From Trichosphaerium sp. ATCC 40318 (lineage: Eukaryota; Protista; Tubulinea): a DNA stretch of 64,000 nucleotides. Location: contig JALMLS010000585.1 of NCBI GenBank assembly GCA_038496445.1, forward strand, positions 394,224-458,223, written 5' to 3'. Shown here piece after piece: positions 27,880 to 59,919 of this stretch (its first letter is position 1; every line of letters starts with the position of its first letter). The notes beneath the pieces were generated by a model. That model was not told the DNA's origin. It did no database searches and saw nothing but the letters and a program-made list of their open reading frames with translations. Position numbers and translations under genes: made by a program.

Positions 27880-30800
27880 TTAAACAAGAGAAGTTCTAGA
27901 AGTAGCGTTTAATGCTGCACGAACTATAGGCATCACGTGTTTTGGTTTAGGTCGATCACTAAGAAAATGAAGTCAGCAACAGGGTTTCTGAGGCAGAAAA
28001 AAAAAAAAGACGTACGTTGCACCAAAGCTGTTTTGGACTGAAGGTGCGTTTGCCCATCCATATAAAGGTACTCCATTTTTATCGATAACATATACACCAG
28101 GTTGAACAACGTATTTTTCTCCAATAGGGTTCTGTCCAGTAAGATTTTTCTGTAGAGAGAAACCTCTACTTATTTCATGACTATCATCACCAATCAAAGG
28201 AAAATTCAAGTTCCATTTCTCTTGTGTCTTTATCATCTTATTTGTAGATTGAGAGCTAATACCAACAATAGATCCTCCTTTAAATGCAACCTAATAACAC
28301 AATCAATAAAAATCACGTGCACAAAATGGAGCAGAAAAAACAAAAAATAATCATACCTCAGCCATATATTTTCTCCATGATCTTAGGTATCGTCTGCAAA
28401 ATACACACCACGACCCTCTGAAGAAAATAAGTATAGTAAAACTCTTTGTTTCCATCTCTTCATCTAGCCATTTTTTTGCATTTGACAAGTCAAGAGTGCG
28501 TGTATAAGTATCAGCATCAAAGCTAGTTCTCGAAGTTCTAAAAAACAACAATAAGAAAAACAAAAATCACCAATTTTTGTGACGTACTCGAATCCTGAAA
28601 TTCCTACTATACCATCCTCTATTACTACCTTTGAATGATCTATAGAATCAGAAGAAGACTCAGAAGATAGCATTGAGTTTGGTGCTACATCAAACTCTTG
28701 AAGTGCATGAAGGTTTATGCTACAAAACGAACTTAGAGTGCTCAACAGCTTGTCATGTTGTGGAGGAATATTAGCAGCAATAGCATCACTACATAGTACG
28801 TAAGTGTTAATACTCTATAGAGTGTTTGGCATTGTTTTAAAGCATACCTATTGTAAAGAACAAAGTTCCCTAGAGTCTGATTTGCTTGAACCAATTCTTT
28901 CTTTTTCAACTTTTTGGTTTTTTGCTCTACAGCTTGTGTGGATAAAACCTTTGCAACACCTGCCATTACACGTGATCTATGTTTTTGAACATAAATAGAT
29001 ACTTGCTCATTATCAAATTGTGCGCTATCTAGCTCCCCAGTAATTACACGCATAGCCATGCATATCGTTGAAATATGGCGACTTGTGTCCGTATTGAACG
29101 TTAACACTATCGAAAAATAAGCCAAAAACAAAAACGACAATGCCATCTTCAATACGTACTTGAAGAAGATCTACCCATGTTGCCACCACCAACGCACATT
29201 AGACACACAATTGGCTGTTTCAGGTAAGTTAACAAGCCACGATGAACTAAGAATGATGTTGCTGCTTTTACGAACAGACTTTTTGGAGCGCCTTGTTTAC
29301 CAAATCTTGCCATTCCTCGTTGAACAATGGCTTGAAGGCCTTCAACTACAGAAGCAGGAAGAATATCAAGGATTGCCATAAACTCGACAACAACTTCATC
29401 TAGCAAATCAACAAGCTCTCCTTTACCTTTTGAAATATGCTCTAAAGAAATGTTAAAAACAAGAATTTATTAAGAAAATAATCCAAATAAACAAACAACG
29501 CACCAAGTGGCTTTTTAAAGCGATGAGCGACGCTCATTAATGACAACTTTATAGAAGCACTAAGTATAAGAGATGTTGTAGATGTTTCCGTAAGTATTAA
29601 AGTCCACACATCAACAGGCGGTGAACTAAGAGGGTATTACAAAAAAAGCTGAATATTTATACAAAAAACGTACTTGTACACGTTCGTCAATACGTTGTTC
29701 ATTTGACTTGCTCGTTTTGGTGCCTTCACTTTGTACTCAAACTTTAGTAGATACTTGTACATACGACGAATTGATTTATCTCCACGAGAAGCAACAACTT
29801 TAACAAAACTGTCGATCATACTTTGAGAAGCATCAGGTGTAAATGAAAGAGCAACGCCTTTAATAAAATGACGATCAGACATAAGTCCATGTAATGCGCT
29901 AGCGCCCATTAAATGAGATCCTCTCCATTTATTTTTGTTTGGTTGCCTAAACATGTGTAAGTATTATTTTAATTACAGTCTCAAGCTTACCAAATAAATA
30001 GTCTGGAGGAATAGTCACCATCACCTTCTGTTACGAAGTAGACATATCCTCCGTCATCAATGTGAGTCCTTCTCACTCTTGCTTTTGTATGTATCATATC
30101 AAGAGGTTTCTTTGGTTCCTATAAGATGATTAGAGAAACAGTCTGGCGAGTGAAAGAACTCTCGCTTCAAAACAAAAAAATTCTAAGCAAAAAAAGCGAA
30201 CCTTGACAAGCAAGTTGTAAACAGCAAGTCCTTCCTGTGTACCAACGAAAACAAAATTATCCATTAATGCAACACTCGACACTCTTGTTGATAGCTGTTG
30301 AAAAATATTTTGAGATGAATCCCCAAGGTTAGATTGTATTCCAGAGGCGATTGAATATGCTTTTGTATCTCCAAGACCAAATACATGGATATTGCCATGT
30401 AAATCTCCAGCAATAACAACGCTCTTTAGTAAATGGACACTGGTGAGTGCTACTGGCGTTGGTTTACTGAAAATCAGTTTGGCAGTCTACAATAAAAGTA
30501 AACAAAACAATTCTCTGAATCATCAGTGTCGTTGACTCACGGTTTTGTCCCAACAATAAATTTCATCTCGAGTAACACCAACGACAAGATTATTATTTTG
30601 TTTTAATGATATCCATCCTTTTGATGCATTTTCTGTTTCACAACTAGATAATGTTAACTGGAGCAATAATCCAAAAAAAGGGAAAAAAAAACAATACGAT
30701 TTTCGTTTTGCGCTGGTTGAACAAGCTTACCTGAATAGCAAGTTATATGTCTTCACACAATAAGCTTCAATAATATTCATAGCAGATGAATAAGTTACAA

Positions 30801-31772
30801 GTGCATTTCCATTAACAACAGACGACAAATGACTGATAATTTTACCATGCTTGAAAATAGGTTCATTTTGTTCATCCTTTGAAACTTCGTTTCCTTTAAA
30901 ATCAAGATGGAACACACTCCTAGAACCAAACACACATACACCCTATAAACAAATACACATGTTAGTTTCAAAAAAAACCTTCACAGAATGAACTTACAGT
31001 CGGTTGAATGAAAACACCTTGAAGATAATCGTTTTCTCCAAAAATGGCATCGTAGCGGAATGTCTCATCTTCTTGAACATCATGGATTTGTACGTTATGT
31101 ATCAACGCATCGTCAGATCCATATGTATGGACAGATACAATATGAGTACCCTCAGCACGTATGATACGAACTTCGTGCTTGTTTTTAATATGACGTTGTT
31201 TCTTAAGCTGTGGGTGTGCTACTATTATATCCCTAAAGGTAAAAAGCGGACAATAAGAATCTAAGGATAGAAAACAGTTTTGGAGGTCAAGCCTCATTTA
31301 AACCTACCCAGTGTTCATATACGATGCAGCCATCCAACCTCGTGCACCAAATACTACTGTTTGGCGTTTGTTCGGTTTAGAATTGAGAAACGATGGAAGG
31401 ACATCATTAAGGCCAAAGCTGATAGAGTGTCGTTAGAGAAAGTGTATTGTAGCGTACAAGATTAAACAACGAACCTGAGAACGTTTTTGTGAGCACGATA
31501 GCTTTTTTTCTTTTTCGTTTGTCGCTTCGAGAGCTAATACGTATAGCGTTAGTTGATGAAAATGCGTTGTAGTTGCAAAAACTACGAGTTTTAAAAAACC
31601 GCCAATTATACGTTCGTTTGCATTAAAATTCAAATTAGGAGCGGCCCCGAAACCTCAGAGGCTGTTTTTCACTTTTTGCGTTAGAAATATTCCAATTTTG
31701 TCTGTACAATTATTTACGCACTGAATCTGTCCTAGACACCCTTGTACTTGTTTCGGGACCACCTCTTGGCAT
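27880..31772 (-). CDS. Multidomain protein: beta-propeller-like + degenerate RasGAP + AhpC/TSA (Prx-like) CxxC domain, paralog A
   Basis: Beta-rich repeats (VVIAGDLHGNIHVF; NFVFVGTQEGLAVYNL), a RasGAP-like helical region (YLLKFE..KRASQMNNVL; ILPASVVEGL..RF..AATSFLVHRG..LKQP; ISTICMAMR) and C-terminal FFRGSWCVFCRRYL..IVGISSQ..FPLIGD..QPGVYVID..DRP. Start approximate. Confidence 0.7.
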
Positions 31773-32517
31773 TTTTTCTTAAAGGTGCTTGCAATATAAA
31801 CAATAAACGTTGTGTAGGCGTTTTATAGCGTGATTTGTTACTTTTTGACAATAACTAATTTATAGGAGGCGTTGCCAATTAGAAATTGCAGAATTTACAC
31901 AAAGTGGACCAAATTGCGGAGGTGAAGTTTTTTTCCATCAATTCTATGTAGCATGCAAAGTATGAGCGTCTTAACATGAGACAGTAGGCACCTTTGAAAA
32001 GAAATACTTCCGAGGAATGTTGGCTTATTTTTCAGAAAAACGGTTTTCAGTGCCAAGTCTTAGTAACATCGTCTTTTATACACCATTATATTGTAGTACA
32101 TTGAAGTTGCGGTTAAAATAATTTGCACGAGTCTAAAAAGTGTTCTACAATCACTACTCATATAATTTATGGCGCATTGATCATAAATACAACTGAATTA
32201 CGATAAACCCAAATGACACCATTTCGGACAAACGATTGTCCACCCTTCCTCATTAACTGAACGCAATTACTTCAACTTCATGCAACGTTATGTCAACTTA
32301 TTGTTGTCACCTAAAAATATAGAACCATACTTTACCGTTAAGGATAAGTTTAAGAACTCTCAATCTTGTTTCAAGCTCACAACAAACGAAGAAAATTACA
32401 ACTCTTTTTTTTTTTTTTTTTTTTTTTTAATGTCAGGTATGTACAATACAAGGCTTGTTTTACATTTAATTTTTTTTCTTTCTTTTTTAAACTGGTGTAT
32501 CATGGTATATAGGCAAA

Positions 32518-33570
32518 TCACAACAAAGTTGTAGGAAGGAAACCATCGGAATCTTTAAATCAAAAGAAATGAGTTCAATTTTTTTCTTTCATTTGCAGTT
32601 CATTGCTACAATCAAATACCTCTCTGTATATTATTATTCGCATTTCCCATGGCATAAGGCTCCGCCTCTATTGTATGTACACTCATATTATCGCTATCAA
32701 AGGGATCTATTTGCATTGTACCGCTAAAACAAATCAACAAAGCAAAGCAAAGCAAAAAAAAATAAATTGAACGTGTCAACTGCAAATAAATTGATGACGA
32801 CTGTCACTATTAAAATACCACAACCAAATACCTCACTTTTCATAAAAGCACAGAGAATAAAAGATGATTTGAAGCTCACAAAAAATAAAAAGGGAAAAAC
32901 GTCATCATTTTCTTGAGTGGTTAACTGAATTTTAACGTTAACGTTCGTGAGCTACAGTGAAAACAAGACTGAAAAATATTACCTGTCAGCTGATGCTGCT
33001 AAGCCATCTGATGCTACTGTAGCTGCTGACGAACGTGCGCCAAGTCGCAGTCTGTCAACTCTTCCATCAGTGCGCGGATAGTCGCACATTACATTACTAT
33101 CTCTTAAATCGCTCTCGCGCAGGCTTTGAGTTCGGTATAATTCTACCAAGTACGTTAGTTACGAAACAACGTAAAAATGAGTTAAAACGCCTTTAATCGC
33201 GTAGAATTAAGCACCAAGCGGTACCTTGTTTTAATCCGTCACATTCAGTCTCAAGTCGATTACGTTCGCCTTCTAAGTCTTGTAGGGTATGTTCAAGCTG
33301 TTCAATTCTTAATTGATCGGTATGGGGGTCTCGTAGGACCTTTCCTGAAGCGATTATGCGTTGTAAAGTCTGTAACGCTAAAATTCCATTTTGGCTTTTT
33401 TCAACTGAGATAGCGTCTGCCAAGGTTCGTAGCCATGTGTCACGAAATACACCATCAACGTAGCATTGACGCAAGAATGGCTCAAATTGAGATGTATCTA
33501 CTGACGTAGCTTGGTAATACTGCCCTGGTAGGTTATTTGGCGTTGGCTGCTTCGCCTGTTGCTGACCCAT
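32518..33570 (-). CDS. Hypothetical protein with possible N-myristoylation site and coiled coil
   Basis: MGQQQAK start, coiled coil IEQLEHTLQDLEGERNRLE, further short exons at ~33146-32983 and ~32723-32620. The 3' end is approximate. Confidence 0.55.
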
Positions 33571-34573
33571 ATTTTTGTTTCTATACCCTTAAATAATTAT
33601 TAACTTGCGCGTGGGTTGCGTTGCCAGGTAGTTTTAATCAAATTTTCTACATATATTTTACCAAACCAGAACTTTTCGTGCGTTAAAATGTAGTCTAGAA
33701 AAAAAAAGCAGTAAACACGCTTATAATATCGTTCATTGGTTCGGTTTTGTACCAGGTAAATTGGTAATTGTGATAAGAGCACGACGTTCAAAAAAAGAGT
33801 CTAATTTTACTCAACCAGACGAGGAATGTGTCATGCCTGATCAAAAGAAGGCTGTGAAACCTTTGAGTCACGATTTGCTTTGTTCTTCGGCAGCCTGCGC
33901 TTGCTGTCCCCAATCTCTCCCAATGACCCGAAGGAATGCATGCCTGAAGCAATCATTTCAATCTTGCTTCTATGTAAGCCTCTACACTGTCAACTCATTC
34001 AAGGGCTTTCACATGAATCAACAAGTTCACAGAAAAAGAAAAGTACATATCGACCTTGCAAATCCTCATAGTAATTACGTTGACATTGCTTGTAGGCTAA
34101 ACTTCATGACTACAAGTGCAAGTGTGTCTTGACTTTGAAATATTATGTGAATAAGGCGCGTGCCTTGTTGCATGTTACCCGATTCACTCGTCTCGTCAGA
34201 AGTTTATTACTTCTTTTGCCCAGATCTTGAGCGCCTTGGTACATTAAATCGCTTTAGTGAGCTTTGTCATTCATGTTTGTAAAAGACACGTTTTGGGTTT
34301 GAGGATGGTGAGTGTTGGATAATTACGCAGCTCTGAAATTTTATTTCAGTAAGGTCCATTCTCCGAATATTTGTCGCAAGCTGTCGAAATGCACAAAAGA
34401 CTTACACTACTTATTCTTTAGAAAACAACAAAGCAGCTTTATTTCCTACTCATTATTAATAACACGGTGATACTAGCAAGTAGAAGATGTTTCACGTGAC
34501 ATATTTTTGCTGAAAATAGAAAATTATTAATTTTTCATCTTCTCATAAAAGATAGCTTCACACCGAGGATACA

Positions 34574-35285
34574 ATGCGTCTTACACTTGTTTTCATCTTC
34601 TGTCTCTTTTATACTACACTTTTTGCTTGCGTTTGCCTTCGCAGAAGCGACGAGCAAAGGTTCTGCGATGCTGATGCTGTACTCAGAGTAAAGATTATTG
34701 TTAATTGGCGAACAACTGAAGACAGAAGAGTATTTCTAGCCGAAGTAAAGAGAGTTTATAAATACCCAACAGAGGAACATGACCCATGGGTTAACATTGT
34801 CACAGGGTATCCGACTATTATCGTATTTCAAAAGCAGCTGTGTTCTTTCTAACAAACAATCACAGGAGAAGTTGGCTTACAGACTGCGGCTTTTACTTCG
34901 AAGAGCAAAAAGTTCGAATGAACAAAACCAAAATAGTTTTCTTACATGTCTTTAGGAGTATCTAATAGCTGGACGTTCTGATGCCTCTGAACAAGTTGCT
35001 TTCTATGTGAACAGATGCGATATGGACAATTTTTGTTCACCTCCTGCACCCAATGTTATTCGCCTCTGTGATAGGCCAGCTGGACCACCGCCATGTGTTG
35101 ATTCTTGTCCAAACCAACTAATGTGCTCGTTTCCAACTTGCACATCTTGTTTGTTTATTCCAGGATCTTGTAATACATGTGCTTCATCTAAATGCTGCAC
35201 GAATGTCTTTTGTCCAGAAGTTGATACTTGTACCGAAGGCTGTGTTCCATCTAATTGTTGCGGAACGCAATGTGTACCTGCTTGA
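34574..35285 (+). CDS. Secreted TIMP/NTR-domain protein with Cys-rich C-terminus
   Basis: Signal peptide ends LFA, then mature CVC..SDEQRFCDADAVLRVKI (TIMP C-x-C...FC.AD.V), ..VKRVYK.., CGF, EYLIAG and a Cys-rich tail. Two GT-AG introns. Confidence 0.8.
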
Positions 35286-35507
35286 AATAAATATGACCAC
35301 GTCATTCCCTTATTCTCTGTAGTAACCAGTTTTTTACAATTTCACCAGCCTAGCGCTATTTTTCCGCCACAAGTCAAACATAGTCGAATTGCGTTAAAAG
35401 CGAAAACAAAGCAGCAATTACTTTGTAGCTCTAACAAAAAGTATTCTACGCACATCACACTCATTTTTTATATTTCAGTGGTATTCTACAAACACGTGTA
35501 CACAAAA

Positions 35508-36620
35508 ATGAACTCAAACAGCGCATTCTTTGATGAGATCCCTGTGGAAATCATTCTTCACATTCTACAGTATGTTTCTGTTTTATCTATGCCCGCAGTA
35601 GTGTATACATCCAAGATATTACGCAATGTCGCCGTACAGCTTTTGAAGTACGTCGACAGGAGAACTATAACAATAAGAACAAGGAAAGAACTAAAAAAAC
35701 TATTCAAGAAAGCTCCACATCTAATATCGATACATACTATTAACCTTTGCTTTGTCATCACACAGAAAGACTTAAAGTATCTACAATGGGCTTACGCACT
35801 AATTCTGAAGGGAATAAAGCGAGTTGATTTTACAGGTTTTTTTGTAATTAATGGTATTGACTTTAGTAACTGTCACAAGACAACAACCGTGACTGATGAT
35901 CATCTTAAACAACTTGCTGGCATTCACAATATTAATTTAACAAGCTGTCATCTTGTTACAGATGATGGTGTTAAGTCATTGGCTGGTATTCATACAATTG
36001 CTTTACTCTATTGTGATACTATAACTGACAAAGGTGTGAAGGCTTTAGCAGGAGTTCATACTATTAGTTTATACTATTGTGATAGAGTAACAAATTATGG
36101 TGTTAAAGCACTTGCTGGCGTTCATAAGATTGACTTAACCGGGTGTAACAAAATTGATGATGAGGGAATTAAGGCATTGGCTGGTGTACATACCATTAAT
36201 ATTAATCACTTTTGTAAAGTTACAGATGATGCTATTAAAGCACTAGCAGGTGTTCATACTATTGACATAAGTAATTGTTATGCAATAACAGATGATGGTA
36301 TTAAAGCATTAGCTGGAGTTTATAAAATTAACTTAAGCTTTTGTAATGTTACAGACGATGGTATTAAAGCACTTGCTGGAGTTCATACAATTGATTTAAG
36401 CTTTTGTGAAGGTGTAACAGATGATGGCGTTAAAGCACTTGCTGGAGTTCATGCGATTAACTTAGCTAATTGTAAAGGTGTAACAAGTGAAGGAATATTA
36501 GCTTTGGTTGGTGTGTTACACATCATCACATCTGTTACAAAAAACGGCCTTGAAGCTTTAGGTGATGTGTATATCGACAACTGCCATTATGATCCTACCT
36601 TTTTGATATCTCACTACTGA
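35508..36620 (+). CDS. Intronless F-box/LRR protein (about 9 LAGVHTI.L..C..VTDDG.KA repeats)
   Basis: F-box FDEIPVEIILHILQYV followed by tandem 23-aa cysteine-containing LRRs in an intact 370-aa ORF. Confidence 0.9.
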   Translation: MNSNSAFFDEIPVEIILHILQYVSVLSMPAVVYTSKILRNVAVQLLKYVDRRTITIRTRKELKKLFKKAPHLISIHTINLCFVITQKDLKYLQWAYALILKGIKRVDFTGFFVINGIDFSNCHKTTTVTDDHLKQLAGIHNINLTSCHLVTDDGVKSLAGIHTIALLYCDTITDKGVKALAGVHTISLYYCDRVTNYGVKALAGVHKIDLTGCNKIDDEGIKALAGVHTININHFCKVTDDAIKALAGVHTIDISNCYAITDDGIKALAGVYKINLSFCNVTDDGIKALAGVHTIDLSFCEGVTDDGVKALAGVHAINLANCKGVTSEGILALVGVLHIITSVTKNGLEALGDVYIDNCHYDPTFLISHY

Positions 36621-36976
36621 AAAAAAAACAATGTGTTTCATTGTGTTGACCTGTTTTATCAATAAAAAGACTAATAATAATTCCATTTCTTTGTGTTATT
36701 ACTCATTACCCAAGCAATCCTTTGTTTACCATGACTATACAAGGAAACGCTAGAAAGATATTTGTGTATCGTTCATTGGCTCCTACCAATAACAACAATC
36801 TGATTGAACGAGAACATATCTCTAGGCTTGACCAAACAGCCAGCGCAGATAAGAGTTAAGCAAGGCAATCCAGAGATTTTTTTTCAGAGAAATAGTTGGT
36901 CAATCTATTTATTTTTTGGTAGGACGACTTTTTAAGTAATTGTCTTGTACTAAAAACAGCAACACAAACAACACAA

Positions 36977-37684
36977 ATGTCACTTGTAAGCTTACCAACT
37001 GAGCTATTAGTAGACATACTTAGCCGTGTCAAAAAAAGGGGTCCTGTAACACAATCGTGTGTAGCCTTGGCAAATATCGTCCAGCAACTCTCGTAGGATT
37101 TACATCACTTTAATTAACCATATCGTGTACATTCAAACGAGGATATGCCGTTACATCTGGCCTAATTTTATAGGCATTTTGCGGAAGTACGCGCATAGAA
37201 GTCGGTTATAAGGTTACAGACGTTAAGGTATTAAGCATTTGGTCAGGTAACGATCTCAGCATATTATTCTAGTCTGCACGGAAAGTTTTATAGACGTTTT
37301 GGCGTCAGTAGCTCGTTGCAGGAGTAAAACAAATCAAACTTAAATTGGTGCGAAAAGGTTTTCACATTGATGATAGGATTAAAGAGTTATAAGCAGGTGT
37401 ACAATCTGATTTTTAGTTTTGTGTATGCAAACAGACAATTTACAGACGAAGGCATCAAAGCTTTAGTAGGAGTTAGTACCATTTGTTTATCGTGTACATC
37501 CGCTGGAGATGACAGTGTCGTGCCTCTAATCGAAGCAGGAGCGAGAGATATTGATTTGAGCTGGACGAAGATTACTGATCTTACAATAAATGCGCTTATG
37601 GCTAGCAAAGTGCATAGCGCTAAAATATCTGGTTGTCAAGGTGTATCTGAAAACGGCATAAAAACTTTTAACTTGTACTCGTGA
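36977..37684 (+). pseudogene. F-box/LRR pseudogene
   Basis: F-box MSLVSLPTELLVDILS with a premature TAG at ~37094, scrambled LRRs and a final open LRR segment (FTDEGIKALVGV..). Confidence 0.75.
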
Positions 37685-38019
37685 TTAGTCCGTATTTGTG
37701 CCGGGATTATCGATCAATAAGAAAAGCGATCATTTCTTATTTTTTACTTATAACTTAAACTTTTTCCATGCACCTTATATTCTGTATAGCACGTGCTAGC
37801 ATGTTAATAAAATATTTAAGATTGCAAATTACACATTTTAAGGTTCATCACTATGATCACTAACATATGTAACACATAAAGATCTTGTGGGACTATTTAG
37901 AAATGTGACAGTAAGTTTGGCTTTATTCTTATTACATCAATATCATTAGTCTGATGAAGGACACTAGATGAAGTCTCGGGGTTGAGAGTTTTATACTTCC
38001 TTTGTACCAGGGAGTATTT

Positions 38020-38210
38020 TGTGAACCTTACATGAAGCTCTAGTAGCTATCGTCAACATACGCACCAACAAGCTCTTTAATACCTTCATCTGTTACTTGC
38101 ATAACCCACCACTTAAATGTATTGCATGAACACCATCAAGGTATTTAATACCATCATTCGTTATCTTCGCATGGCCCAAACAAATCTAATGAACGCTTTT
38201 CAGTGGCTGT
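38020..38210 (-). pseudogene. LRR remnant of the same F-box/LRR family
   Basis: Minus strand reads LKSVH*ICL..KITNDGIKYLDGVHAIHLS...VTDEGIKELVG, with a stop and a frameshift. Confidence 0.65.
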
Positions 38211-38325
38211 TGCTATTGACCTTGATACGGTTCAATAATATTGAGTTATTTCAAGGAAAGCCAAAGAGATAAGGCGTACCCACACTTAACTTTAAACTGA
38301 CATTTTTTAGTTTTGTGTACAAGAA

Positions 38326-39870
38326 TGGAAGTACGCGATGAACAGCTTATTAATATACTTGATGGTTGTATGAAAGCAGGTACATGGCATTGCCGGATGT
38401 TTTAGATGATAATCTTGTAATAAGAACCCTACATACGTGAACAGGCAATGAGAGAGCTGAAAGAGTTCCAAAACAAAGAATTGGTACGATTAAAACCGCT
38501 AAAAGTTGAAAGTAACCTATAAACTGTCTGTGACGCCGTTTTGTTGCTTCAACAAGTCGCACATATCTTTCATTTGTACTAAAGTGTTTGTGACCATAAC
38601 ATGACTCAAGTTCTCTTATTGTGGTTGGATCCTTGTCTTTGTAGAAATCACGTGTTTTGCTGCAGTGTTTCAAGACGAAGCAATTTTTTATCGACAAAAC
38701 AAAGATGCTTTTTGAACTCGTTCATTCGATTGCTTTGCTTACTTCTTTGTCCAAGGGAATGGGTTTAACAGCGCTTCTACGCTTAGCAATGAACAACAGT
38801 TTACCCCAACAAATTTGTGTGATGTCCTCTATCGCTTTCAAGACTACTATTATGCAAGCTGCGGTACACTTTAAAAATTACAACACATGTTGGTCGGATT
38901 AAGGAAAGTTAAATAGATCAAATGGCACATGCTTGATCAGGAGGTCAGGGAAGATATTAAAAAAAAGTAAACGTTTGCTTCTTTTCCTTTTATCAACATG
39001 CAATGCTGACACTCCAATTAAAAGACTGTTGATCTATACTTATGGAATTACGATAAAAATTATATGAGATCAAAATCTATGCCATTACTAGCTGTTGCAA
39101 GTGTTGAATTAGCAAATGGAAAATGGCCAGAGTTCTTTGGTATAGTTATCCCAGAGTGTTTTAAGACATGCATGAACAAGGACACTCGAGGACAACAACA
39201 AGCTATCGATTTAATACAATGTGGTGTTGAGGTACATTCTTCATACAGCAGAATATTAGACGCTAGTTAACCATTTATGGTGGTGTTAAAATTTTGTCTT
39301 TAGGCATCCCAAACGCTGGCAATTAAGCATGCAAGCAGTATTATCTGTGTCATAAAATATGTACTATCGAATAGTGATCACGATATAGTTAGCCTTACTG
39401 CTCTAGAAACATTACTGTCCATAGACTGTTTCAGGCAAGTGCTTTTTTGGAGCAAAACAGTTTCTGTCGTTTTTACATTGAGACGTTCACACTAGCATTG
39501 TGAAAACTCATATACCTTTGAAAAGATAATTACAACATGTGAACCCTGAACATGTTTTTAAAGTTACAAATCCGCTTCTTCTTGGGGACATTCCTGACGT
39601 TTTTTTGACAAATACTTCATCCCATTGTTGGTTAGATAGCTAATCTCACTGGTTTTTTACAGATCATATTTGAAAGAGCAACCAAAGCAAAGGCGTTACA
39701 TATCAAATAGTATTGTTATCTTGCTAGAAGAAAAAAAAAGACAGAAAGAACTTGAGTGTGCTGAAACAAATGGTTATGTTTTGGATAGTGATTCTTTTGG
39801 TGTTCAGCATTACATTAACGTTGCACAGAAAGTATACAATTGTCTACAAAGTATGAATGTAGGATGGTGA
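38326..39870 (+). CDS. Short importin-beta-like protein, copy B (possibly frameshifted pseudogene)
   Basis: Same exon series as 13659-14987 (IKWHMLDQEVREDIKK; RSKS..AVASV..GKWPEFF; GCAAGT donor at ~39435; YLKEQPKQRRYISNSI). The frame across the A8 run at ~38960 appears broken. Confidence 0.5.
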
Positions 39871-47917: not shown

Positions 47918-47971
47918 TTGGTTTGTTTGAGGAAGCGTTGCGTTGTTGGTAGCTCAAAATTGTCCTCCAGT

Positions 47972-48115
47972 TATATCTTGTGTGAACGACCAGTTCGTTT
48001 TATCTTGTGTGAACGAACCGTTCGCGAAATCTGTGTGTGAACTACCCATTCGTTTTATCTTGTGTGAACGACCAGTTCGTTTGGGTATGGGCATATCACG
48101 AACAGGGATACCCAA
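47972..48115. repeat. Non-coding 27-bp tandem repeat x4 plus terminal hairpin (possible transposon-end remnant)
   Basis: Unit TATCTTGTGTGAACGACCAGTTCGTTT occurs about 4 times (2 identical, 2 variant), followed by a TTGGGTAT...ATACCCAA stem. Confidence 0.8.
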
Positions 48116-49019: not shown

Positions 49020-49790
49020 GGTTGGATTGGCAATAAATTTTCCGCTTGGCAATGTGAGGGCATCACATTTTAAATCATCCACCAAGTCTTTATATCCTCT
49101 ATTTAGTAACTTAAATACACTATATGGAACCCATGACAGATCCAAAACCTAAGAAACAACTAAGAAACGCAGTTTTCAAAACAAAAACAACTAGTGCCTC
49201 GGAATACTCGTGTAACCTTGTAGGTGTTCCTAATATAACATGTCGTGGTTTTTTAAGCGTTGTTAATTCATCCACTTGTGCACCATTTGGATATACCAAG
49301 CGTCTCCAAAATTAATGAAGCTTTTTTGTATGGTAACTTGTTGGACCAATATTATTGCTTGCACGTGACTTTTATCAGTATCAATTCTGTTTAAAACACC
49401 AATTAGGTATGCAGCTACGCCATCATTTGACATGGTGTTGTCTTCAAAAACCACATCTGAGCCTATTCGAAGCAATCAGCATTGAAACACATAAGAGATA
49501 TTTTATTATTTTCACTTTTGCTATGGTTTTTGTGCAAGAAATTTTTTACACAGAAACAACTCAACTGTAAGAGTGTAAAAATCTGATTGCAGCTTGTGCT
49601 TTACTAAAAACATAAAGCTTAATGCGTACCAGAGCTCACAGGAATGATGACTTGCTGTTGAATATCACTAGGCTTCTTGTAACCTCTATAACTGTAAGTT
49701 ATTATGCGCTATGAATTATTTTCAATACTGGCTCTTTTAGCTTGAAATCATCAAAACAGTCGTAGATAGTCTGTATCCATGGTGTCCTAC
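49020..49790 (-). pseudogene. Degenerate eIF4A-like DEAD-box helicase fragment
   Basis: Q-motif DCFDDFKLKEPVLKII..RGYKKPSDIQQQVI, GSDVV, AAYLIGVLNRID...VQAIIL, HVILGTP and LLNRGYKDLV. Walker A GKT and DEAD are not recognisable and frames shift. Confidence 0.55.
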
Positions 49791-50182
49791 TGCATGATGC
49801 ATAATAAATGCACTTTAAGCCACTTAATATTTCCCTCACGTGTAGAACTCAACAAAATGGAATGTGCTGTTCAATGGGTGATGTAACTGCTGGAATTCCT
49901 GTCGAAAACCTCTTTGCCTTTTAAAACTACATGCTGTACTGCAACATGAACAAAAACAAGCGCAAAAGTTGGCTTGTTGCAAAACTTGTATAGAATTCTC
50001 TGAGCAACTCCTTTGATGGTTGTTGACCTATATCCTTTGTTGCGTTTTTATTAAGGCTACAACAAGCGAAACACAAACAACACGTACATCAATAGTATCA
50101 TATGACTTTATTATTTATTGTACAAGTTTGTTGTTTGATGTTATTTTTTTTTCTTTCTTTTTTCTGAGTTTTTTGGGGTTTT

Positions 50183-53116
50183 TTACTTTACACATTGAAG
50201 AAACGGATGAGTAGCAAGCTGTTCTGTTGTAGGTCTTAAGTTAGGATCACGACGAAGGCATGCTTTAAGAACATTGATAACATGAGCATCAGGTACAGCA
50301 GAAAAAGCTATTTTATACCGAGGATTTGTAATAGCATGCATTTTCTGTAGTATTTTTCCAAGATGAGCAAAAGGTGTTGTACCGTAAACCATTTGGTACA
50401 GTATACAACCCAAAGACCATATATCACTTTTTCTGCTCATTTTATGTGTTTCACCACCTGTTGTACTCTCAGCAGTATCAATAAATGACTAGTAAAGCGT
50501 TAGCAATGGCAACAAGAAAAGAGCAAAAGAAATATGCGACTTAATTCCGAAAAAAGAAAAAAAGTTCAAGTCGCTCACGTGTTTTGACCTCCATAAAAGG
50601 AATTGATTTTTCCGTGTAAACGTACCTCTGGTGCCATATAATTCATTGTACCAACTTTGGTATCTTTGATAATATTTGTGGTGTCAATACACTCGATCTT
50701 GTTGGCGATTCCAAAATCAATTAATTTTAGACAACCTTTGACAAGAACAAAATTTGCTGGTTTCAAGTCAGAGTGAATGATCCTCTTATCATGAACAACT
50801 TGTACAGCAGCTATAATCTGTTGCCAATATAATCTAACGTAATTATTCTTCTCAGCCCAAGGTTTATCCCGAAATCGTGTTAAAATTCTGTGAAAATCGG
50901 ATTCACCACATTCGAGTACCTTTTTGTTAAAGTCAGTATTATAAACAAATTTATACTCAAATACTTACGATGTGTATGTATCCACGAGAACGCTCTATTT
51001 GTGAATCGATGAGGCTAGATAAAAAGTTAGTCGGAACATAACTAAACGGTAAAACAAGGCAGGAAACTATCGAATGTACAAAAAAAAAGTTGGTTTTGTA
51101 TTTCGTACCGTATTACGTTCGGACTCTTTCTTAGAGTTTCAAGCAGCGTGATCTCGTTTAAGTAACTCTTGACAGTACGTTCATCCGCTGTTTTGATATT
51201 TACACGTTTGATAGCGACGATATTGAGGTCCATACCTGTAAAAAACAAAACGAGTCAACTCTTAATATCGATGACACGTGTGACAGTTTGAAGTATCGTA
51301 CCTATCGCTTTAAATACGACACTACTACCACCTTTTCCAAGTGGAGCTTTATCAAGCTTTACATACGGGTTACCATTAACTTCGATGTAATTTCCAGACC
51401 ACTCCAAGAGTTGTTGCAAAACTCCTCGTTTGATTTGGTTTTCTGTAGGCTCTGGTGCTTGTTTTGGCATTTCTCTTCCAGCTGTTGTAGGTGTTGCCAT
51501 CGCTGCAACAACAGAATGTACAGGTGTTGAGCACCATGGTTCTAATGGAATTGTAAGAAAGAAACAGTAAACGTAATCCAATGGAAGAAGTATAAAAAGA
51601 AAGAAACGTACTTTGTGAAATTGATACAGGTGTTGGTGGTGACACAATAGGTGCCTCTTGTGAGTCTATAGCCATAGGACTTGTTTCTGATTCCGTAGGC
51701 ACATCAGCCATGATTTCATCACGTTGATGTGATGATGGTGTATGATGATCCATGGGCCCAATAGAATGCTTGTCCAAAACTGTTTTTGCTTCTACAAAAA
51801 ATATTAGAAAGATTGGCGCTGAGGTGAAGCATGAGGCGCTCAAACGTGTTTTCTTTAAAAAACGCCTCGCCAAAAGAAAAGTGACAAAGAGCTACGTACT
51901 CGGTGTTGTGGAAGCAACAAGTTTTTCAGGCTCTTTTTCTGTTTCCGGTTTAGGTTCTTGAGTTAACCGTCTAGCACCTCCAGAAAATGCGCCTGTGCCT
52001 AAATAAAGCCATTTAGTACGTAATCGAGACGTGTTTATTATTTTGGTAATGCAAATACTACACCCACGTGGCTTGTCAACAAAGAAAAAGAAGAAAAAAA
52101 CAGGAATCGTAAATAACTAAAAAGGTTGTCGTACCAAAAGTGTTCACACGTAATCTACTTCGTTTTACGTAACCACGAGAGGAGGAAGATGGAGCGAGCG
52201 GGTTATGACCTGCTGGAAGCACTGGAGTGCTACTTTGTCTAGGTTTGAAAGTGTACTGCTTTGGTGCATACTTTGACCTTAAACTGCTTGTTGAAGGTCT
52301 CCCTGGCTTCCTCGGCGCATGTGAAGAGCCTTGACCTGCTCCTGCTCCATTTGATACATCTTGGAGAGCAGCACGGTGTTTTTGAGCATTCTTTTTCGCC
52401 ATTTGCGCTCGTGTTTTCTTAGGCATTCTTACTGCTTCAGTTATTAATTTATAGCGTTCAGGTAGGTATGGAAGAAGTCCTGGATCCTTTGTCTTGCATA
52501 TTGATCGGAGTGTTTCGGCAAAATGCTTATCTGATCCAGAAGCTTTTTTAGTGCCTGCTACGAGGACCTTTCGCGCCTCTTCAACGTTTCCTAAGTATTA
52601 TAGTAAGATTTGGAGACTTTAAAAACGAGCAAGTCGAAAAAAAACAAAAAGGTTTTTAAAAAACCCGCCAACTGTTGTATTTATTTTTTGTTCCAGTTCT
52701 AGTACCTTCAAGGTAGTGAAACTTGCCAAAGTTCACGTAAAAAAAAGTTGAGGAAGGTTGGTGTTTTTCTATCATTTTGTACGTCTGCATTGCGAGATCT
52801 CTGTAGTTTAGCCTATAAAACGGCGTTAAAGGACAGTTTTAAATACAATATCCAATAAAACCGTTGCGTACTCAATCTGGCACTTCGCAAGCATAAGCAT
52901 AATGCGCATAAAGCTAGAGTTCTCGTAATCGCGCACTTTAATGTGCTCTAAGGCCTCTTCAATTTTTTTTATAGCGGCATTGAAATCTATGCGTGTCTTG
53001 TTTACTAGCATCTCTCGCACTTGTAGCCACCAAAATTGCGCATCTTGTTTTGATAGCTTCTTTTTTCTTCTTACGTTTGGGTTGTTCTCCTTATCTACAG
53101 CAGCCACAGAAGTCAT
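50183..53116 (-). CDS. MPS1: Mps1/TTK dual-specificity spindle-checkpoint kinase
   Basis: LGKGGSSVVFK, VAIKRV..SYLNEITLL, IHSDLKPANFVLVKGCLKLIDFGIA..DTTNI..VGTMNYMAPE, SRKSDIWSLGCILYQMVYG.TPF, plus an N-terminal KEN box and TPR-like region. Confidence 0.95.
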
Positions 53117-53586
53117 TTCGCATCCCAAACAAATAAAGTCTAACGGTAAAAATTTGAAAAAAAAAAGGCGCTTAATTTTGGAGACATGTTAAGTTATCTC
53201 ATTTCATTACGCTCAGAATAACATTATGAGTATGTGCTAAGTTATTACCGTTGAACTGAGTGCTAAAGTGATGTTCGGCCGTTAAAATCGTTTGAAACTG
53301 GCAGTAACGTTACAAAATTTGTTCTTCGCGGTTATTTTGTTCCCTACGTAGGTTCAAAGGCAGATGATATCGAAACTAGGAGACTTTATCACAATTTTTT
53401 GTCTATATCTCTTCATGGTGTTGCCTCGTGAGTGTCAACTCTACTATTTCATTTTGACCTTATTGGGTCTTTTATCTCAAAAAAAAAAGGTTTTAGCTCA
53501 AAAGACACTGCAAGTACGCCAGGTTACGTTAATACTAATACAATACACTATTTTGACACTTTTTTTTGGTTCTTCTTTTTTGTAGT

Positions 53587-54930
53587 CTACTGAGCCTTCT
53601 TCCCCTTCTTACTACTTGGCTTCTCGTTGGCGTTTGGAGGACCTTTTTTACTCCAAATGCGACGTCGAGCGTTTGTAAACCAATAATTAACTTGTTTGCT
53701 TGTAAGACCAGTATCGCTTGCTAGCTGGTGTTTTTCATTCGTTGTAGGGTAAGGAAAGTCCGAATGTGTATAAAACCACAGACGAAGTTTTTCAACGGCG
53801 GCTTTTGGTAGTGAGTTTCGCTTAGGCCTTGACGATTCTATACAAAGGTTAGTGAGAGCATGGTAAAATATGTGACATGTCAAAACCGTTTTTTTTAACT
53901 AACTTTTTTTTTTTTTTCGAAAACTCAGGTTATTTTTGTGTCTGTTTTTAGTTCGTTCACGTGACTACTAATGTCAAACGGAATGAACGGAAAAAACTGA
54001 ACTAATAACAAAAATTATTTTCGGGTGTACGTACGCGCGGAGTTGGTTTTTGGTGGTTTGTAGTCATCTGGTTTGATTCTTCTTGGTCCTAGCACCAACC
54101 GTCTGCATCTTTTTCTAGGTGGTTCCTCCGTTGTTGTGTCTTCTTTATCACTACCTTCTTTTTCGCTTTCACTGGCTTCTTCTGTTGACTCTGTACATGT
54201 TTTTCGCTTCCTGCTATCTGAAAGTGCAGTTAAAGCAAAAGAAAGCGAAAGAGAATACAAAGAATAAAAAACTTTACCAAACAGTTGAGTTTTGCTGTTT
54301 TGAAGAAATATTTAATTGAATAACAGCCATCACGTGATCAAAAAAAAATTTCTTTAAAAGGTACCTTTGCTCGTTGAGACTTGCATATGGAACATATAAA
54401 GTACTTGAGATGCAAGTATATCCATGTAACATTCTTCAGAAGGAAGACAGGATTGATCTGTGCGATTTGAGGTTGTTTGTTTGACATGACACTTTATACT
54501 TTGACACCCGTTGTTAAACTTTGTAAGCGCATGCGCTGTTGATACTTTTGTTTTAAAATCGTTTGCTGAAGCCTAAAAAAAAGTTGTATTAATTTTGAGG
54601 CTTGCTCGTTTAAGTATAAGGTGCTCAGACGTTATTTAATTACATCCTTGCTATCCTCATCGCACCTCGCTTACGTCCCCTGTCAAAAAATTTGACACGA
54701 CTTCTAATTTGCGCGCAAGGCTCTCCGGACACTCACTGAGAGGTCTAATACTCCGCATGAATTCTTCCATTGCTTTAGCCTGAAAACGAAGGCAAATTAT
54801 TAATAAAATATAACACAATCTCCTCCGTCTTAACGGGTCTTTACGTGTGTATTAAGGTCCTTGACTCTTTTTGCTTTTTGTAGAGTAATGTCATCAACAC
54901 AATTTTTTTTCATACCGTTTTGTAACATCT
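53587..54930 (-). CDS. TALE-class (KN-type) homeodomain transcription factor
   Basis: Last exon RPKRNSLPKAAVEKLRLWFYTHSDFPYPTTNEKHQLASDTGLTSKQVNYWFTNARRR (PYP loop, WF.N.R). Upstream exons are open to ~54930 and the 5' end is uncertain. Confidence 0.85.
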
Positions 54931-55778
54931 AAGATTTTAGAGGTTTAATTAACTTGTCATGTAATATAACTTGCTAAAATGTACCTGTATATGGTTAGAT
55001 GCTTTTATTTTGACACTTGACAGTTAATAGACAGGAGCGTTAAGGAAGAAAATTGACTGTGAATCAATTAATGTCTTAGGGCTTTTGAGGCAAGTACAAC
55101 CGTTGACGAGAATTACATTTCTTGCTTTGACCTTAAGCTGTAGTAATCTGTTGCTGGAGATTCCGAGATGCCAGGGTTTTTTTATCTGTCACTAGAAAAA
55201 GTCTTGGCGGGTAGTAAAGTGTAAAAATAAAATAAGAAGGAAGACACTCTGGTGCTGCTATTAGTAATCCTTTTGAGATAAATACATCATTTTATTTTTG
55301 TCGCACCTGCCTAATAATAGCGAAAACCGACGTCGGTTTCAAGTGTGGAGCTGGGTTCAGGATGTGTATTAACCTTGGATTCGCGTGTTAACAAAGTAGG
55401 AATAGCCCTTTTTGTACATTTATTAATTGTCATCACGTGATGTTAATCACTCTTAAAAAAACCAATAAATTATTCTATCTCCCTTATTATTTTCAAAACT
55501 TACGGAGTTGCTCGGCAGAACGCCCTTGTTAATTAGCACCCAAAATTGTAAGTTTGCTTGTAGAGCTAGTAGACTGCGTACACTGCAACAAACTTCCGTG
55601 GAAGCTTGCAAGAATTTGTAAATTTAGCACGATACTATACCACGTGGCTGTGTGCAGTAACTGTTGAATTGTGTCCGAAATAAGCAAAATAACAACTTCA
55701 AGAAAACAGTTCTCATTTCAATCAACATCCTTTCAATTGACCAAAACTCCACTCTAGTACCACAAACGCAACGATAGG

Positions 55779-58700
55779 ATGCTATCTCCACGAAGCCCTA
55801 GAAAACCTAGGCACGGTATTGTAAGCGAAGAAAAGGAAAGCAATTCTGGACTTACAAACGGCTTTTCGGTTTGTCTTCAGCGTTGTTCATTTGATTGAAT
55901 ATGCAGTTTATTGTGATAAACTTGCGGAAGATTTTTTTCTCCCGTTTTATCGCTGTAGCTCGAAAATAATACTTGAACTTGTTCATTAACAACGTTTAGG
56001 GTGGTAAGAGACAACAGAAAAAAAAATGGCCAACACCGAAAAATGTCGCAAGGTAAACGTGGTTTATACCGTTAAGTACTCCTTATCAATATCTAGCTAT
56101 GAGTTAAACAGTGTATTACCGCCTTATATTAATAGTAAAGTATACAAGCGAACGAAAGTTGTATTCGCTAGTGATGGCTGGATGGCAGCGTCGTATGATA
56201 AAGTTGGGTAAACTAGAACTAAAATTTTATTCTTACTGTTTTTGGCTTCAACTCTCTTTGATATCTCTCTAGGGACATTATAGTATCACATGCCCAGCTT
56301 GGGAAGAAAATCCACGTTAAGAACAGTCACGTGACTATTATGCTTAGTGCTGTTGGGAGTCATATCATTTCGACGCATGAAAAAATACTAGACAATGATG
56401 ACGTGGCTAGAACAGTTCAAATGTATAATATAAATCAAGATTCTACTTTTTCTTATCGGATTGGTCTCCAAAAATCTGAGTACCTTCAAGGTGTTTTTGC
56501 TGATACCACTGTACGTAACAAATAAGAATTTTATCGTTTAGTGCTTCTTGATATTAAACTACAATAGGGTATCTGTATCATAGGTTCGATGAGTATCACC
56601 AGGGTTGATTTCGAAGGAAAAGCGATACTTCAAAATAAGGCAAAGTCAGACATTTTTAGTCACGGAAAAATCATTCGTGCATTGTCTTCTGTTGTTGATG
56701 GAAGTGCACTTGTTACTTATAAAAATGCATTGAATATCATAGAAGTGTATTGCATAGAATCACTTACCCTCCAGTTCAGGTACGTAATTTAAAACATACG
56801 AAAACAATTTTCGAAGTTTTTTCTAAAAAAGGGTTTGCAAGTTGTGAGTCACTTCTTCGGATTGGCTTGAGTTACTCACAATTTTAGCTGTAAAACCGAC
56901 AATGCCTCCAAAGGTTGGATATCCTTACATCAAAATAATCACATAGTTGTGGGTGTAACGAGGGATGACATTTACTGTTGGAACAGAAATGTACGAATAG
57001 TAAAGTTATCGCTTTTTTTTTTACTTTTTGTAGACACAAGAAGTAATTTTCTGCAGACCTACCAATATACCTTTATCCAGCGTACATTTGTTAAAAAACG
57101 TGGTAATAGCGGGAGACTTTAGTGGGAATATTCACGTATTTGGATTAGGTACAAACTCTTTGCAGATGCGAAAAAACGCGAATTTTACGCGAAACCATAA
57201 TTTTTTTTTCTTTCTAGTTTGATAGAATGAAATGGTTACCTTGTACCACCATAAACCAGATCCATTAGTAAACATACAATTAACAGCTGGTTTCTGCAGG
57301 GGATCGTAAAATATTTACGAAGGTACCCATGCATGGGTCTCCTTCTTCTTTTTTTTTTTACTCTTTTTTTTAAGGCGTTCTAACACTGTGAAAGGTGATG
57401 CTAAAGCTTATACAATTGCCATTGGTACAGGTTCTGAGCTACGAGAGTCTCAAAGCATACTTGACAATTTACAAACAAGAGTGTCAAGTATAGACTTGGT
57501 CGATAACTTCGTTTTCATCGGAACTCAAGAAGGACTTGCAGTATACAATTTGTTGATAAAGGTGCGTTTTTGTGTAGAAATATAAATGAGTCACGTGCTC
57601 CCAGTTTTGGTTAATTCTTTGATCAGGAGCCTGTAAAACCATTGCAAATGGTCTCAACTACAGATCGTGTGAGTCGCATTCATATACGATCAGAGTTTGT
57701 TTACTTTGTTACGGATGGAAACGAAACAGAATCGAAATTGTTTGTGTGGTAAGTTATTTTTTATCGGTGAAGATGATCGTTTTCTTTTGAGCCAATAACT
57801 TTCTTATTGTTCCGTTGAATCACCTAACAAACATAATTTTAGGAAACCTAATAAGAGGCGTTGGAGAGGATCTCACTTAGAAGATAGCCAAATTCTCAAG
57901 AATCTAATGTCATCGAAGCTATTTCTCAAAGCGCTCACTCTTGCTTTGACTCCAGATGCACCTCAATCAGTTATAGACAGCATTATAACAGTTGCTTCAT
58001 TCAGGGGATCTTCTGTTACTCTTAACTTACTACGTTATATTCTTGACTACGAATACAACGTTCTTGTACACAAGAGAGCAAAGAGGACAAACTATGTTCT
58101 CATCAACTTTTGCCTGTAAGTTTGTTACATTTTTGTTCAATCTAGTTTTTAATCTGTTCTCTCTTAGAGTAAACCCTCAACAAGATTGGACTTTTATTCT
58201 TACTGAAACATCATTGGCTTCTTTAATTTTCAGTTCTCTTGTAAGATTTCGTCTTAGAGGACATGTTTCACGGTTCAGAAAAGTGCTGGGTAAAAAAGAA
58301 TTACTTCAGTGAATATAACTCTAACTTTTGTTCAAGAACGCATTACAAAAGATAAAGGGTCTCTTTTAGAGTGGCTCGATGATATAGTTTATGATTTTAT
58401 GGAGATTTTAGAAGAGTTACCAAGTATTATTGTCAGAGGTCTTCAAGAAATTGTATCAAAAGGAAGAGCCAAGTTTTTAAAAAGAGGTGCTTCCGATAGA
58501 GTGTTTATTCAAGCTGCAACAGCCGTTCTTGTTGGTCGTGGTATTTGTACCTTTATACAAAGACCTAATGAATCATTTGCTTTAACAGGATCAAGTCTTA
58601 GTACATCCAAACGTGCGTAGTATCCGTCTAAGTGATACTATTTTTTCTTATTATTTTCTTAGATGGTAATCATACCAACACAAGCCGGAGTATTTCAACA

Positions 58701-59919
58701 ATTTGTATGGCATTACGTGTCCTTTCTGGTGAAATTGACTATGCTGAGTTCGATGAAGAAGGTATAGGATACTATGTAGAGAATAATAAGGAAAGAGTAA
58801 AAGGCGCTATTGAGACAATGTTAAACGGAACGGTACAGCTGAAAAAACCAAGAAAGTTGAAAGTTAAGAAAAGTGAAGTTGTTCAAGCAAATCAAACACT
58901 TGGCAACTTTGTTCTTCACAACAGGTCCAAGAACGTACCTTTGCAATATTAACCTTAATTGTAGTGATGCTATTGACGTCAATATCTCTGAGAAAGAGAT
59001 AAAAGCACAACTGAAATCGTTTTGTAGTTCAAACTTAGAACAACTTCATAATTTCGAATCAACATATGAATTCAAACTTGAAAGGCACTCTTCTTTAGAC
59101 TCAGGCGGAGTAGCCACACCACATGCCGAACAAGCTTCCATACAAGGAAAAGACGTGATATGGGAAGAAGAAATTGTGAGGGTAGCAGGCGAGAGTACTG
59201 TACAGTAAGTCAACAATATGAGATCACGATCTCTAATCGTCTTACCCTTAGCGGAAAGTACTACAGTACAGCCAAAACACTATCTCTTGGATCACTTTCC
59301 CCAAAAGAGTGGCTTGATTCAGAGATAAACGAGAATTCATATACAGTTCTCATATTCTTCAGAGGGTCATGGTGTTTCTTTTGTAGTAAATATCTTCGTT
59401 CATGGAGAAAATATGTTGATGAGGTACGTTCGAGAAACATTCATTAGAGCGATGTTTAAATGGTTTCTAGATCACGTTTTCTGGAGGATCTATTGTTGGT
59501 ATCAGCTCTCAATCTACAAATAAGATGATAAAGACACAAGAGAAATGGAACTTGAATTTTCCTTTGATTGGTGATGATAGTCACGAAATAAGTAGAGGTT
59601 TCTCTTTGCAAAAAAACAGAAGTGGTGCCAACCCTTCTAAAGATAAGAAGGTATTTCAACCTGGTGTATATGTCGTTAAAAGTAATGGAACACCTTTATA
59701 CTGTTGGACAAATGCTCCAGCGGGATATAATAACTTTGGAGGAAGGTAACAAACAAAAAGAAACAAAATACCATGTTTTTTTTACTAACATTTGATTCTT
59801 CTTTTAGCGATCGTCCAAAATCCAAACATGTCATGTCAATTATTCGTCAATCTACCAGTATAGAAAGTACTAATTCAGACACGGATGATGAGTACCTGTC
59901 TGTTCGTACTATTGTATAA
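55779..59919 (+). CDS. Multidomain beta-propeller-like + degenerate RasGAP + AhpC/TSA CxxC protein, paralog B
   Basis: Exon-for-exon homolog of 27880-31772 (HGKII..LSSVV.G.ALVTY; ASKGWISL.Q; WTFILTETS; QANQTLGNFVL; FFRGSWCFFCSKYLRSWRKY). TAA at 59917-59919. Confidence 0.72.

Follow-up and report, generated by a model that had tools for sequence, protein, structure and literature searches.

The two genes and their transcripts

The stretch analysed here (the window) comprises 64,000 nucleotides of contig JALMLS010000585.1 from Trichosphaerium sp. ATCC 40318, AT-rich with a G+C fraction of about 0.37, and carries two paralogous genes, here called A and B, lying in opposite orientation. Gene A is located at 27880-31772 on the minus strand, having 16 exons and 948 amino acids in its curated model, and gene B at 55779-59919 on the plus strand, having 17 exons and 964 amino acids. 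Both encode the same order of three modules: an N-terminal repeat region, a central helical domain that is very probably a diverged relative of the RasGAP (Ras GTPase-activating protein) domains and, after a loose linker, a C-terminal AhpC/TSA-type domain bearing a W-C-x-x-C motif. The two proteins are collinear and 52% identical overall, with 56% identity in the repeat region, 47% in the helical middle, 33% in the linker and 69% in the redox domain, which is the best conserved module.

The coordinates and strands of the pair, as put forward in an original prediction made from the letters alone, are confirmed by tblastn, in which stop-to-stop pieces of B gave a collinear chain from 56017-59877 (B) to 31510-27889 (A) with 42-76% identity per exon. 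The motifs that it quoted are all present as well: FFRGSWC(F/V)FC, HKRAKR or PKRASQ, VLVGRG or FLVHRG and MA(L/M)RV(L/I)(S/T)G. Regarding its description of genes of about 800 amino acids and 15 exons with matching structure, the sizes were too small, but intron positions and phases are indeed identical in A and B, with the sole exception of a 246-nucleotide intron (57149-57394) found in B only. No third copy was found in the window.

Each gene model forms one open frame, that of B ending in a single terminal stop, and 7 of the 16 introns of B are backed by public-run contigs that are spliced across them at GT..AG borders (55821-55999, 56053-56096, 58613-58662, 58925-58964, 59205-59251, 59424-59470 and 59746-59807). 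The remaining B introns were placed by paralog conservation, frame and GT..AG splice signals; the model of gene A rests wholly on homology to B and splice signals, its first two exons being tentative. Splice models from a dynamic programme first missed five of the seven RNA-backed introns, and the final models were adjusted by eye and with forced junctions. Taking both genes together, the 31 introns are short (39-108 nucleotides, plus three of 179-246; median about 55), with TAG as the acceptor in 27 of them and donors that are mainly GTAAG or GTACG. In the intron present only in B the acceptor is AAG, which is atypical. One contig of run X3 starts inside this intron, at 57258, and then continues unspliced through the following introns; the sequence just before this point on the contig is one which we take to be the SMART template-switch oligo, and the start may come from an RNA with its 5' end inside the gene, from pre-mRNA or from carried-over DNA.

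The linkage between the central and the redox exons is given by four spliced contigs of B. In public run X2, record 7 has exon 12, with the FLR-like motif, spliced to exon 13, and record 8 has exons 13 and 14 spliced together. In run X1, record 2 (526 nucleotides) holds the end of exon 13, the whole of exon 14 (linker), the whole of exon 15 (CxxC) and the start of exon 16, reading through the linker in frame, and record 5 has exons 16 and 17 spliced together. Because these contigs join exons 12 to 17 stepwise and the frame stays open, the redox exons of B are part of one spliced mRNA and not a separate gene, an outcome that would have refuted the original prediction. It could still be argued that the fusion is an artefact of the gene models, with the Prx-like exons coming from a separate downstream gene, as contigs are not single molecules and cannot prove them, none reaches from the propeller-like exons as far as the redox domain (exons 4-11 of B have no spliced evidence) and the spliced evidence is restricted to B. 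However, the 526-nucleotide contig links the linker exon with the last RasGAP-like exon on one side and with both redox exons on the other, the overlapping contigs reach exons 12 and 17, the frame is open and stop-free across the linker in both copies, and the intron phases match; an artefact is considered extremely improbable.

All three modules are under purifying selection. The ratio of nonsynonymous to synonymous substitution rates (dN/dS) is about 0.17 for the repeats, 0.21 for the RasGAP-like domain and 0.25 for the redox domain, against about 0.63 for the linker (amino acids 706-790), and thus the modules are constrained in both copies. The duplication itself is judged to be old, since synonymous sites are saturated, with dS above 2 in the first two modules.

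Central domain and RasGAP profiles

In order to compare the central region with RasGAPs, metagenome contigs were scanned with a degenerate DNA pattern for G-F-x-F-L-R-[FL]-x-x-P-A-I-x-x-P, giving 120 loci, and nine diverse metagenomic RasGAP domains of 380 amino acids, each matching PF00616 at E values from 1e-29 to 1e-71, were aligned as profile A4. The hhalign queries were two-sequence alignments (A and B) of single exons. Exon 10 matched columns 48-90 (P 0.06), ending at the conserved Glu that precedes the finger loop; exon 12 matched columns 161-226 (P 0.037), placing L-V-G-R on F-L-R-F and the Pro nine residues further on the Pro of the motif; and exon 13 matched columns 268-288 (P 0.24), the helix after K-E-P-x-M. 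The offsets between B residue and profile column are 370, 368 and 376, respectively, and therefore the three matches are collinear with RasGAP spacing, the similarity extending over about 240 columns. In eight control exons (exons 11, 14 and 15, the last of these with linker and CxxC, plus five from outside the central domain), P values were 0.39-0.73 and the offsets were scattered.

When the columns of each exon were shuffled 150 times, scores as high or higher were obtained 8, 2 and 45 times for exons 10, 12 and 13. Over 3.4 million combinations of these shuffles, concordant offsets occurred at a frequency of 7.9e-4, a summed score as high at 9.2e-3, and both jointly at 1.8e-6. A natural null of 81 windows of 90 amino acids, cut from the same long proteins outside their GAP parts, yielded 0.025, 0.049 and 0.25 for the scores of the three exons; the hhalign P values can thus be regarded as calibrated.

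A second line of evidence comes from language-model features, where the FLR-like exon 12 (58339-58611) found PF00616 clusters in 29 of 30 named Atlas matches, with a score of 0.94 and 200 of 256 features in common; the finger exon, searched in the same way, yielded no usable match. In addition, the predicted fold fragment of exon 12 aligns to residues 839-917 of p120RasGAP with the longest aligned length and the highest identity in the list, which lends weak support. The FLRXXXPAXXXP motif of RASA1 starts at F901 (PMC12871552), within that segment. The exon-12 model is a three-helix fragment, on which the Foldseek search of the Protein Data Bank (PDB), the Atlas shape search and the PDB fold comparison were uninformative, and the model of exon 13 was too poor to use.

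Several results weigh against a relationship of this kind. No single exon of A or B matches PF00616 in Pfam even at E values up to 10, and PDB profile searches with the exon alignments A1, A2 and A3 found no match. Exons 11 and 14 show no collinear signal against A4; single RasGAP sequences are too noisy as hhalign templates, the collinear triple appearing only with the nine-sequence profile. Moreover, the K-x-L-Q-x-L-A-N helix has lost its Lys and Asn, both invariant in A4, which also bears on a GTPase binding that is only predicted, and weak rival Pfam matches exist to the Utp13 and ELP1 helical families. On these grounds, the middle could be unrelated to RasGAPs, and the protein a beta-propeller followed by an alpha-solenoid (Utp13-, ELP1- or WDR19-like) to which a redox domain was appended. 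Besides the missing Pfam RasGAP match, this is favoured by below-threshold matches to the Utp13 WD40-associated domain (E 1.1e-3, exon 10 of B, the first helical stretch after the repeat region), the ELP1 alpha-solenoid (E 0.043, exon 12 of A) and the second propeller of WDR19 (E 0.0047, exon 7 of A at 30202-30486, 16.6 bits for a cut-off of 27). However, these belong to three different families, each under its cut-off and each in one paralog only, whereas for RasGAP three exons give a collinear signal, with the joint shuffle probability given above and with independent language-model support. A solenoid of that type is accordingly rated very unlikely, and the relationship of the central region to RasGAP is taken as real with high confidence. 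The degenerate RasGAP middle of the original prediction is upheld in this form, apart from the per-exon Pfam match that it lacks.

With respect to the catalytic residues, the similarity to canonical RasGAPs (p120RasGAP/RASA1, neurofibromin, GAP1 and SynGAP) includes the FLR Arg, the Pro nine residues further on, the upstream L-P, the Arg of R-T-L-T-L and the Asn of F-R-G-N, all kept in A and B. Differing from those proteins, the A4-invariant G-F-x-F-L, P-A, the Lys of A-K-x-L-Q and the Asn of L-A-N are replaced: F-L reads V-G in B and V-H in A, P-A reads T-F and T-Y, and in both copies Lys has become Met and Asn has become Gly. Consequently, instead of FLRXXXPAXXXP the motif is V-G-R-x-x-x-T-F-x-x-x-P in B and V-H-R-x-x-x-T-Y-x-x-x-P in A, retaining just the Arg and the last Pro, correctly spaced.

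The arginine finger of RASA1 is R789 in the F-R-G-N-S loop (PMC13311836). In an extended hhalign alignment, of low posterior confidence at this point and anchored by the invariant Asn two residues later, the candidate finger of B is Arg469 (K-R-T-N on F-R-G-N), but the aligned position of A holds Gln473 (S-Q-M-N); the K-R pair three residues upstream is invariant in both. Of the two arginines that had been proposed as retained, the FLR Arg is present in both copies, while the finger Arg would fall on the second Arg of HKRAK-R-TN in B and be a Gln in A (PKRAS-Q-MN).

A polybasic stretch (58816-58854, plus strand) is conserved in the pair, reading K-K-P-R-K-L-K-V-K-K in B and K-T-K-K-L-K-K-K in A. 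It is flanked by the last core helix of the RasGAP-like domain and by a block of 12 residues, V-Q-A-N-Q-T-L-G-N-F-V-L, invariant in A and B, and may be a membrane-binding or nuclear-localisation patch.

N-terminal repeats and C-terminal CxxC domain

The C-terminal module matches PF00578 in both of its halves and in both copies when single exons are searched, the matches being collinear and covering profile parts 21-60 and 75-120. The values are E 3.9e-5 (24 bits) and E 2e-3 (18.5 bits) for B, and E 0.054 (13.9 bits) and E 7.4e-5 (23.1 bits) for A; each half lies under the 26-bit gathering score, and simple sums of the halves reach 42.5 bits in B and 37 bits in A. These matches support the AhpC/TSA, Prx-like domain that had been proposed. 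Its CxxC pair, invariant in both copies, is located at the N-terminus of helix 1, W-C-F-F-C in B and W-C-V-F-C in A, where the peroxidatic Cys would stand, and the domain also has a cis-Pro-like Q-P-G-V-Y-V strand. The FFRGSWCxFC motif was described as ending each protein; it does exist there, but the CxxC is placed about 140 residues before the C-terminus.

The typical peroxiredoxin motif P-x-x-x-T/S-x-x-C was not found in this domain, whose F-F-R-G-S-W-C-x-x-C is spaced differently and lacks a Pro four residues ahead of the Ser/Thr. PDB sequence matches are weak and point to CxxC sites of PDI and thioredoxin and to Bcp, and the motif looks more like a thioredoxin/TlpA-type dithiol than a peroxidase site. 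Because the peroxiredoxin motif is not evident, a dithiol oxidoreductase or sensor would be more likely than a peroxidase. The comparison group is presumably that of the CxxC-type PRX-like proteins (CDD PRX_like2). AhpC/TSA proteins of this type are normally stand-alone, with about 150-220 amino acids. Their likeness to A and B comprises both PF00578 halves, W-C-x-x-C at the peroxidatic position and the cis-Pro-like strand; in contrast, the domain of A and B is the C-terminal module of a 950-residue protein, the Thr of the Prx motif is not evident, and the word search found no close relative.

The N-terminal region is rich in short hydrophobic stretches, and a unit of about 40 amino acids recurs in similar form in each of exons 6-9 (repeat alignment A5), with internal similarity between exons 7 and 8 (hhalign P 0.0019) and between exons 8 and 9 (P 0.011). 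Pfam searches of every exon of A and B found nothing reaching a family cut-off in this region, and no WD40 match. A WD40 profile built from viral contigs gave no signal against it (hhalign P 0.08-0.96), and the PDB profile search with A5 found nothing. The beta-propeller originally assigned to this part was not borne out beyond these weak internal repeats and the sub-threshold WDR19 and Utp13 matches mentioned above, though it is plausible. The positions of all modules, exons and key residues are listed in Table 1.

Table 1. Positions of exons, modules and key residues of genes A and B in the window (exons listed 5' to 3')
Feature	Position	Strand	Residues	Basis or remark
Gene B exons 1-9	55779-55820, 56000-56052, 56097-56207, 56273-56510, 56568-56779, 56888-56990, 57034-57148, 57395-57561, 57627-57748	+		
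Gene B exons 10-17	57843-58115, 58168-58289, 58337-58612, 58663-58924, 58965-59204, 59252-59423, 59471-59745, 59808-59919	+		
Gene A exons 1-8	31772-31748, 31533-31458, 31418-31308, 31232-30998, 30942-30731, 30643-30541, 30486-30202, 30118-29991	-		
Gene A exons 9-16	29946-29674, 29625-29504, 29441-29160, 29106-28848, 28788-28588, 28537-28357, 28290-28016, 27958-27880	-		
B, N-terminal repeat region	56097-57748	+	~41-387	56% A/B identity
A, equivalent of repeat region	31418-29991	-		
B, putative RasGAP-related domain	57843-59030	+	~388-720	exons 10-13 and start of exon 14
A, equivalent of RasGAP-related domain	29946 to ~28720	-		
B, candidate arginine finger	58084-58086	+	Arg469	extended hhalign alignment, low posterior confidence
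A, residue at finger position	29705-29703	-	Gln473	low-confidence alignment extension
B, FLR arginine equivalent (V-G-R...P)	58537-58539	+	Arg587	hhalign, invariant in A and B
A, FLR arginine equivalent (V-H-R...P)	29241-29239	-	Arg591	
B, linker	59030-59300	+	~720-795	poorly conserved, 33% A/B identity
B, AhpC/TSA-type thioredoxin-fold domain	59300-59860	+	~795-945	PF00578 per-exon matches
A, equivalent of AhpC/TSA-type domain	~28490-27910	-		PF00578 per-exon matches
B, CxxC	59373-59375, 59382-59384	+	Cys820, Cys823	
A, CxxC	28407-28405, 28398-28396	-	Cys815, Cys818	

Possible function, relatives and neighbouring genes

Relatives of the pair were sought on a large scale. A HMMER search with A1, the alignment of the best conserved central exon, against 1.84 billion representative proteins gave no match at E values up to 1e-3, in a library without the window's own protein and with an 86-column query needing an estimated 41 bits or so, so distant kin could escape. 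Word searches with A2 and A6, covering proteins of 0.55-1.75 times the exon length, returned no relatives, and none turned up when metagenome contigs were scanned with A1 or genome contigs with A6. A fusion of a RasGAP fold with a thioredoxin-fold dithiol domain was not found in the literature or protein databases searched. The pair is thus described as a lineage-restricted, new domain combination around a very diverged RasGAP-related domain, which is taken to be real. Loose ends of contigs from X1 and X3 (touching 57484-57523) translate to a third family member, with N-L-I-E-Q-L-N-T-R-V and R-N-G-L-A-V-F-N-L, on a contig of 1803 nucleotides; this member is not encoded in the window.

The interpretation preferred here, held with about evenly balanced confidence, is that A and B are ancient paralogs of a cytosolic, lineage-restricted three-module protein, combining a diverged RasGAP-related GTPase binder with a dithiol domain. 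The N-terminal repeats, of about 350 amino acids, would form a docking platform, probably a beta-propeller. The strongly diverged RasGAP-related domain, of about 320 amino acids, would still dock on a GTP-bound GTPase of the Ras superfamily, being closer to an IQGAP-like binder than to an efficient GAP, given that the F-L of FLR, P-A and the Lys and Asn of K-x-L-Q-x-L-A-N are replaced and that Gln occupies the finger position of A; some GAP activity may survive in copy B by way of Arg469. After the linker, the putative thioredoxin-fold domain could sense peroxide or disulfide stress and alter the GTPase binding of its own protein or, alternatively, could work as a thiol-disulfide oxidoreductase that is carried to the GTPase and its neighbours and acts there. 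A possible site would be the phagocytic or macropinocytic cups, where amoebae run Ras signalling.

On the other hand, the RasGAP-like region might be a structural relic with no GTPase partner, the protein then being a thiol-disulfide oxidoreductase or peroxiredoxin-like enzyme whose repeats and helical middle recruit substrates or provide an anchor. The replacements listed above (an FLR motif without F, L and P-A, a following helix with Met and Gly, and a finger position that is Gln in A) and the highest conservation falling on the redox domain are in line with this idea. Nevertheless, the central domain is itself under purifying selection and has kept L-P, the terminal Pro and the arginines of FLR and R-T-L-T-L at RasGAP spacing, and the GAP-related domains (GRDs) of IQGAPs, with altered signatures, still bind Rho-family GTPases. 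A relic is therefore considered possible but rather doubtful, even though comparable changes go with a lack of Ras binding in IQGAP GRDs (PMC12871552).

A stronger form of the proposal would couple redox state and GTPase directly, in such a way that the oxidation state of the CxxC gates GTPase binding or GAP activity, or that the CxxC domain is delivered to an active GTPase to reduce or oxidise it, with B catalytic and A finger-less. It is regarded as unlikely, and redox control of GAP activity is pure conjecture. Redox control of Ras is usually described via cysteine oxidation on the GTPase itself or via separate enzymes. If the coupling were true, peroxide signals would gain a direct input into small-GTPase signalling within a single polypeptide, and if the modules communicate, the protein would offer a compact natural model of redox gating for a small-GTPase regulator. 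The paralog pair would then make these ideas directly testable, because B has a candidate arginine finger and A lacks it at the aligned position. In addition, the central region exemplifies a RasGAP-related domain beyond per-exon Pfam detection, recovered by collinear profile comparison.

Returning to the preferred interpretation of a diverged GTPase binder, IQGAPs and Dictyostelium IqgC share with A and B a RasGAP-fold domain, putative in A and B, with altered signature residues, but A and B lack CH, IQ or RasGAP_C domains, and their divergence is far greater, with no per-exon PF00616 match. To our knowledge, no IQGAP has an N-terminal repeat region or a thioredoxin-fold domain. In the GRDs of IQGAPs, the finger Arg is replaced by Thr and FLR by YYR, and these domains are GTPase binders with no GAP activity, whereas IqgC keeps the finger and LLR and is a GAP for RasG at macropinocytic cups (PMC12871552). 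Copy A would be nearer to the IQGAP GRDs and B may be nearer to IqgC; the overall residue pattern of the two resembles IQGAP GRDs more than the active GAPs IqgC and RGBARG. The latter, also from Dictyostelium, has RCC1, RhoGEF, BAR and RasGAP domains, its RasGAP being canonical and highly active with an essential Arg (PMC7416115). It is likewise an amoebozoan multidomain protein with a propeller-type domain (RCC1), a RasGAP and further modules, the propeller of A and B being putative; however, it has no redox domain and, outside the GAP fold, no sequence relation to A and B.

Within the redox exon, a block of 135 nucleotides (59483-59617, plus strand, amino acids 841-885 in B; 28278-28144, minus strand, in A) is 95.6% identical at the nucleotide level, with dN 0 and dS 0.27, compared with 45-70% identity and dS from 0.9 to above 2 in the genes outside it. 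The block resembles a tract of gene conversion, the two copies being inverted and 24 kb apart, or may reflect an unusual constraint on synonymous sites.

Regarding the surroundings, a small local gene family with F-box and leucine-rich repeats flanks both paralogs, at 60272-60763, 35286-36617 and 37328-37681 on the plus strand and 23635-24180 on the minus strand. Its members are 34-47% identical to one another, with an LRR_6 match of E 1e-23 in 35286-36617 and weak F-box matches in Pfam. Further away, pieces sharing 71-86% identity and belonging to no Pfam family are encoded by the segments 11064-11845 and 63169-63932, which lie about 52 kb from each other and may represent a duplicated gene or a repeat element.

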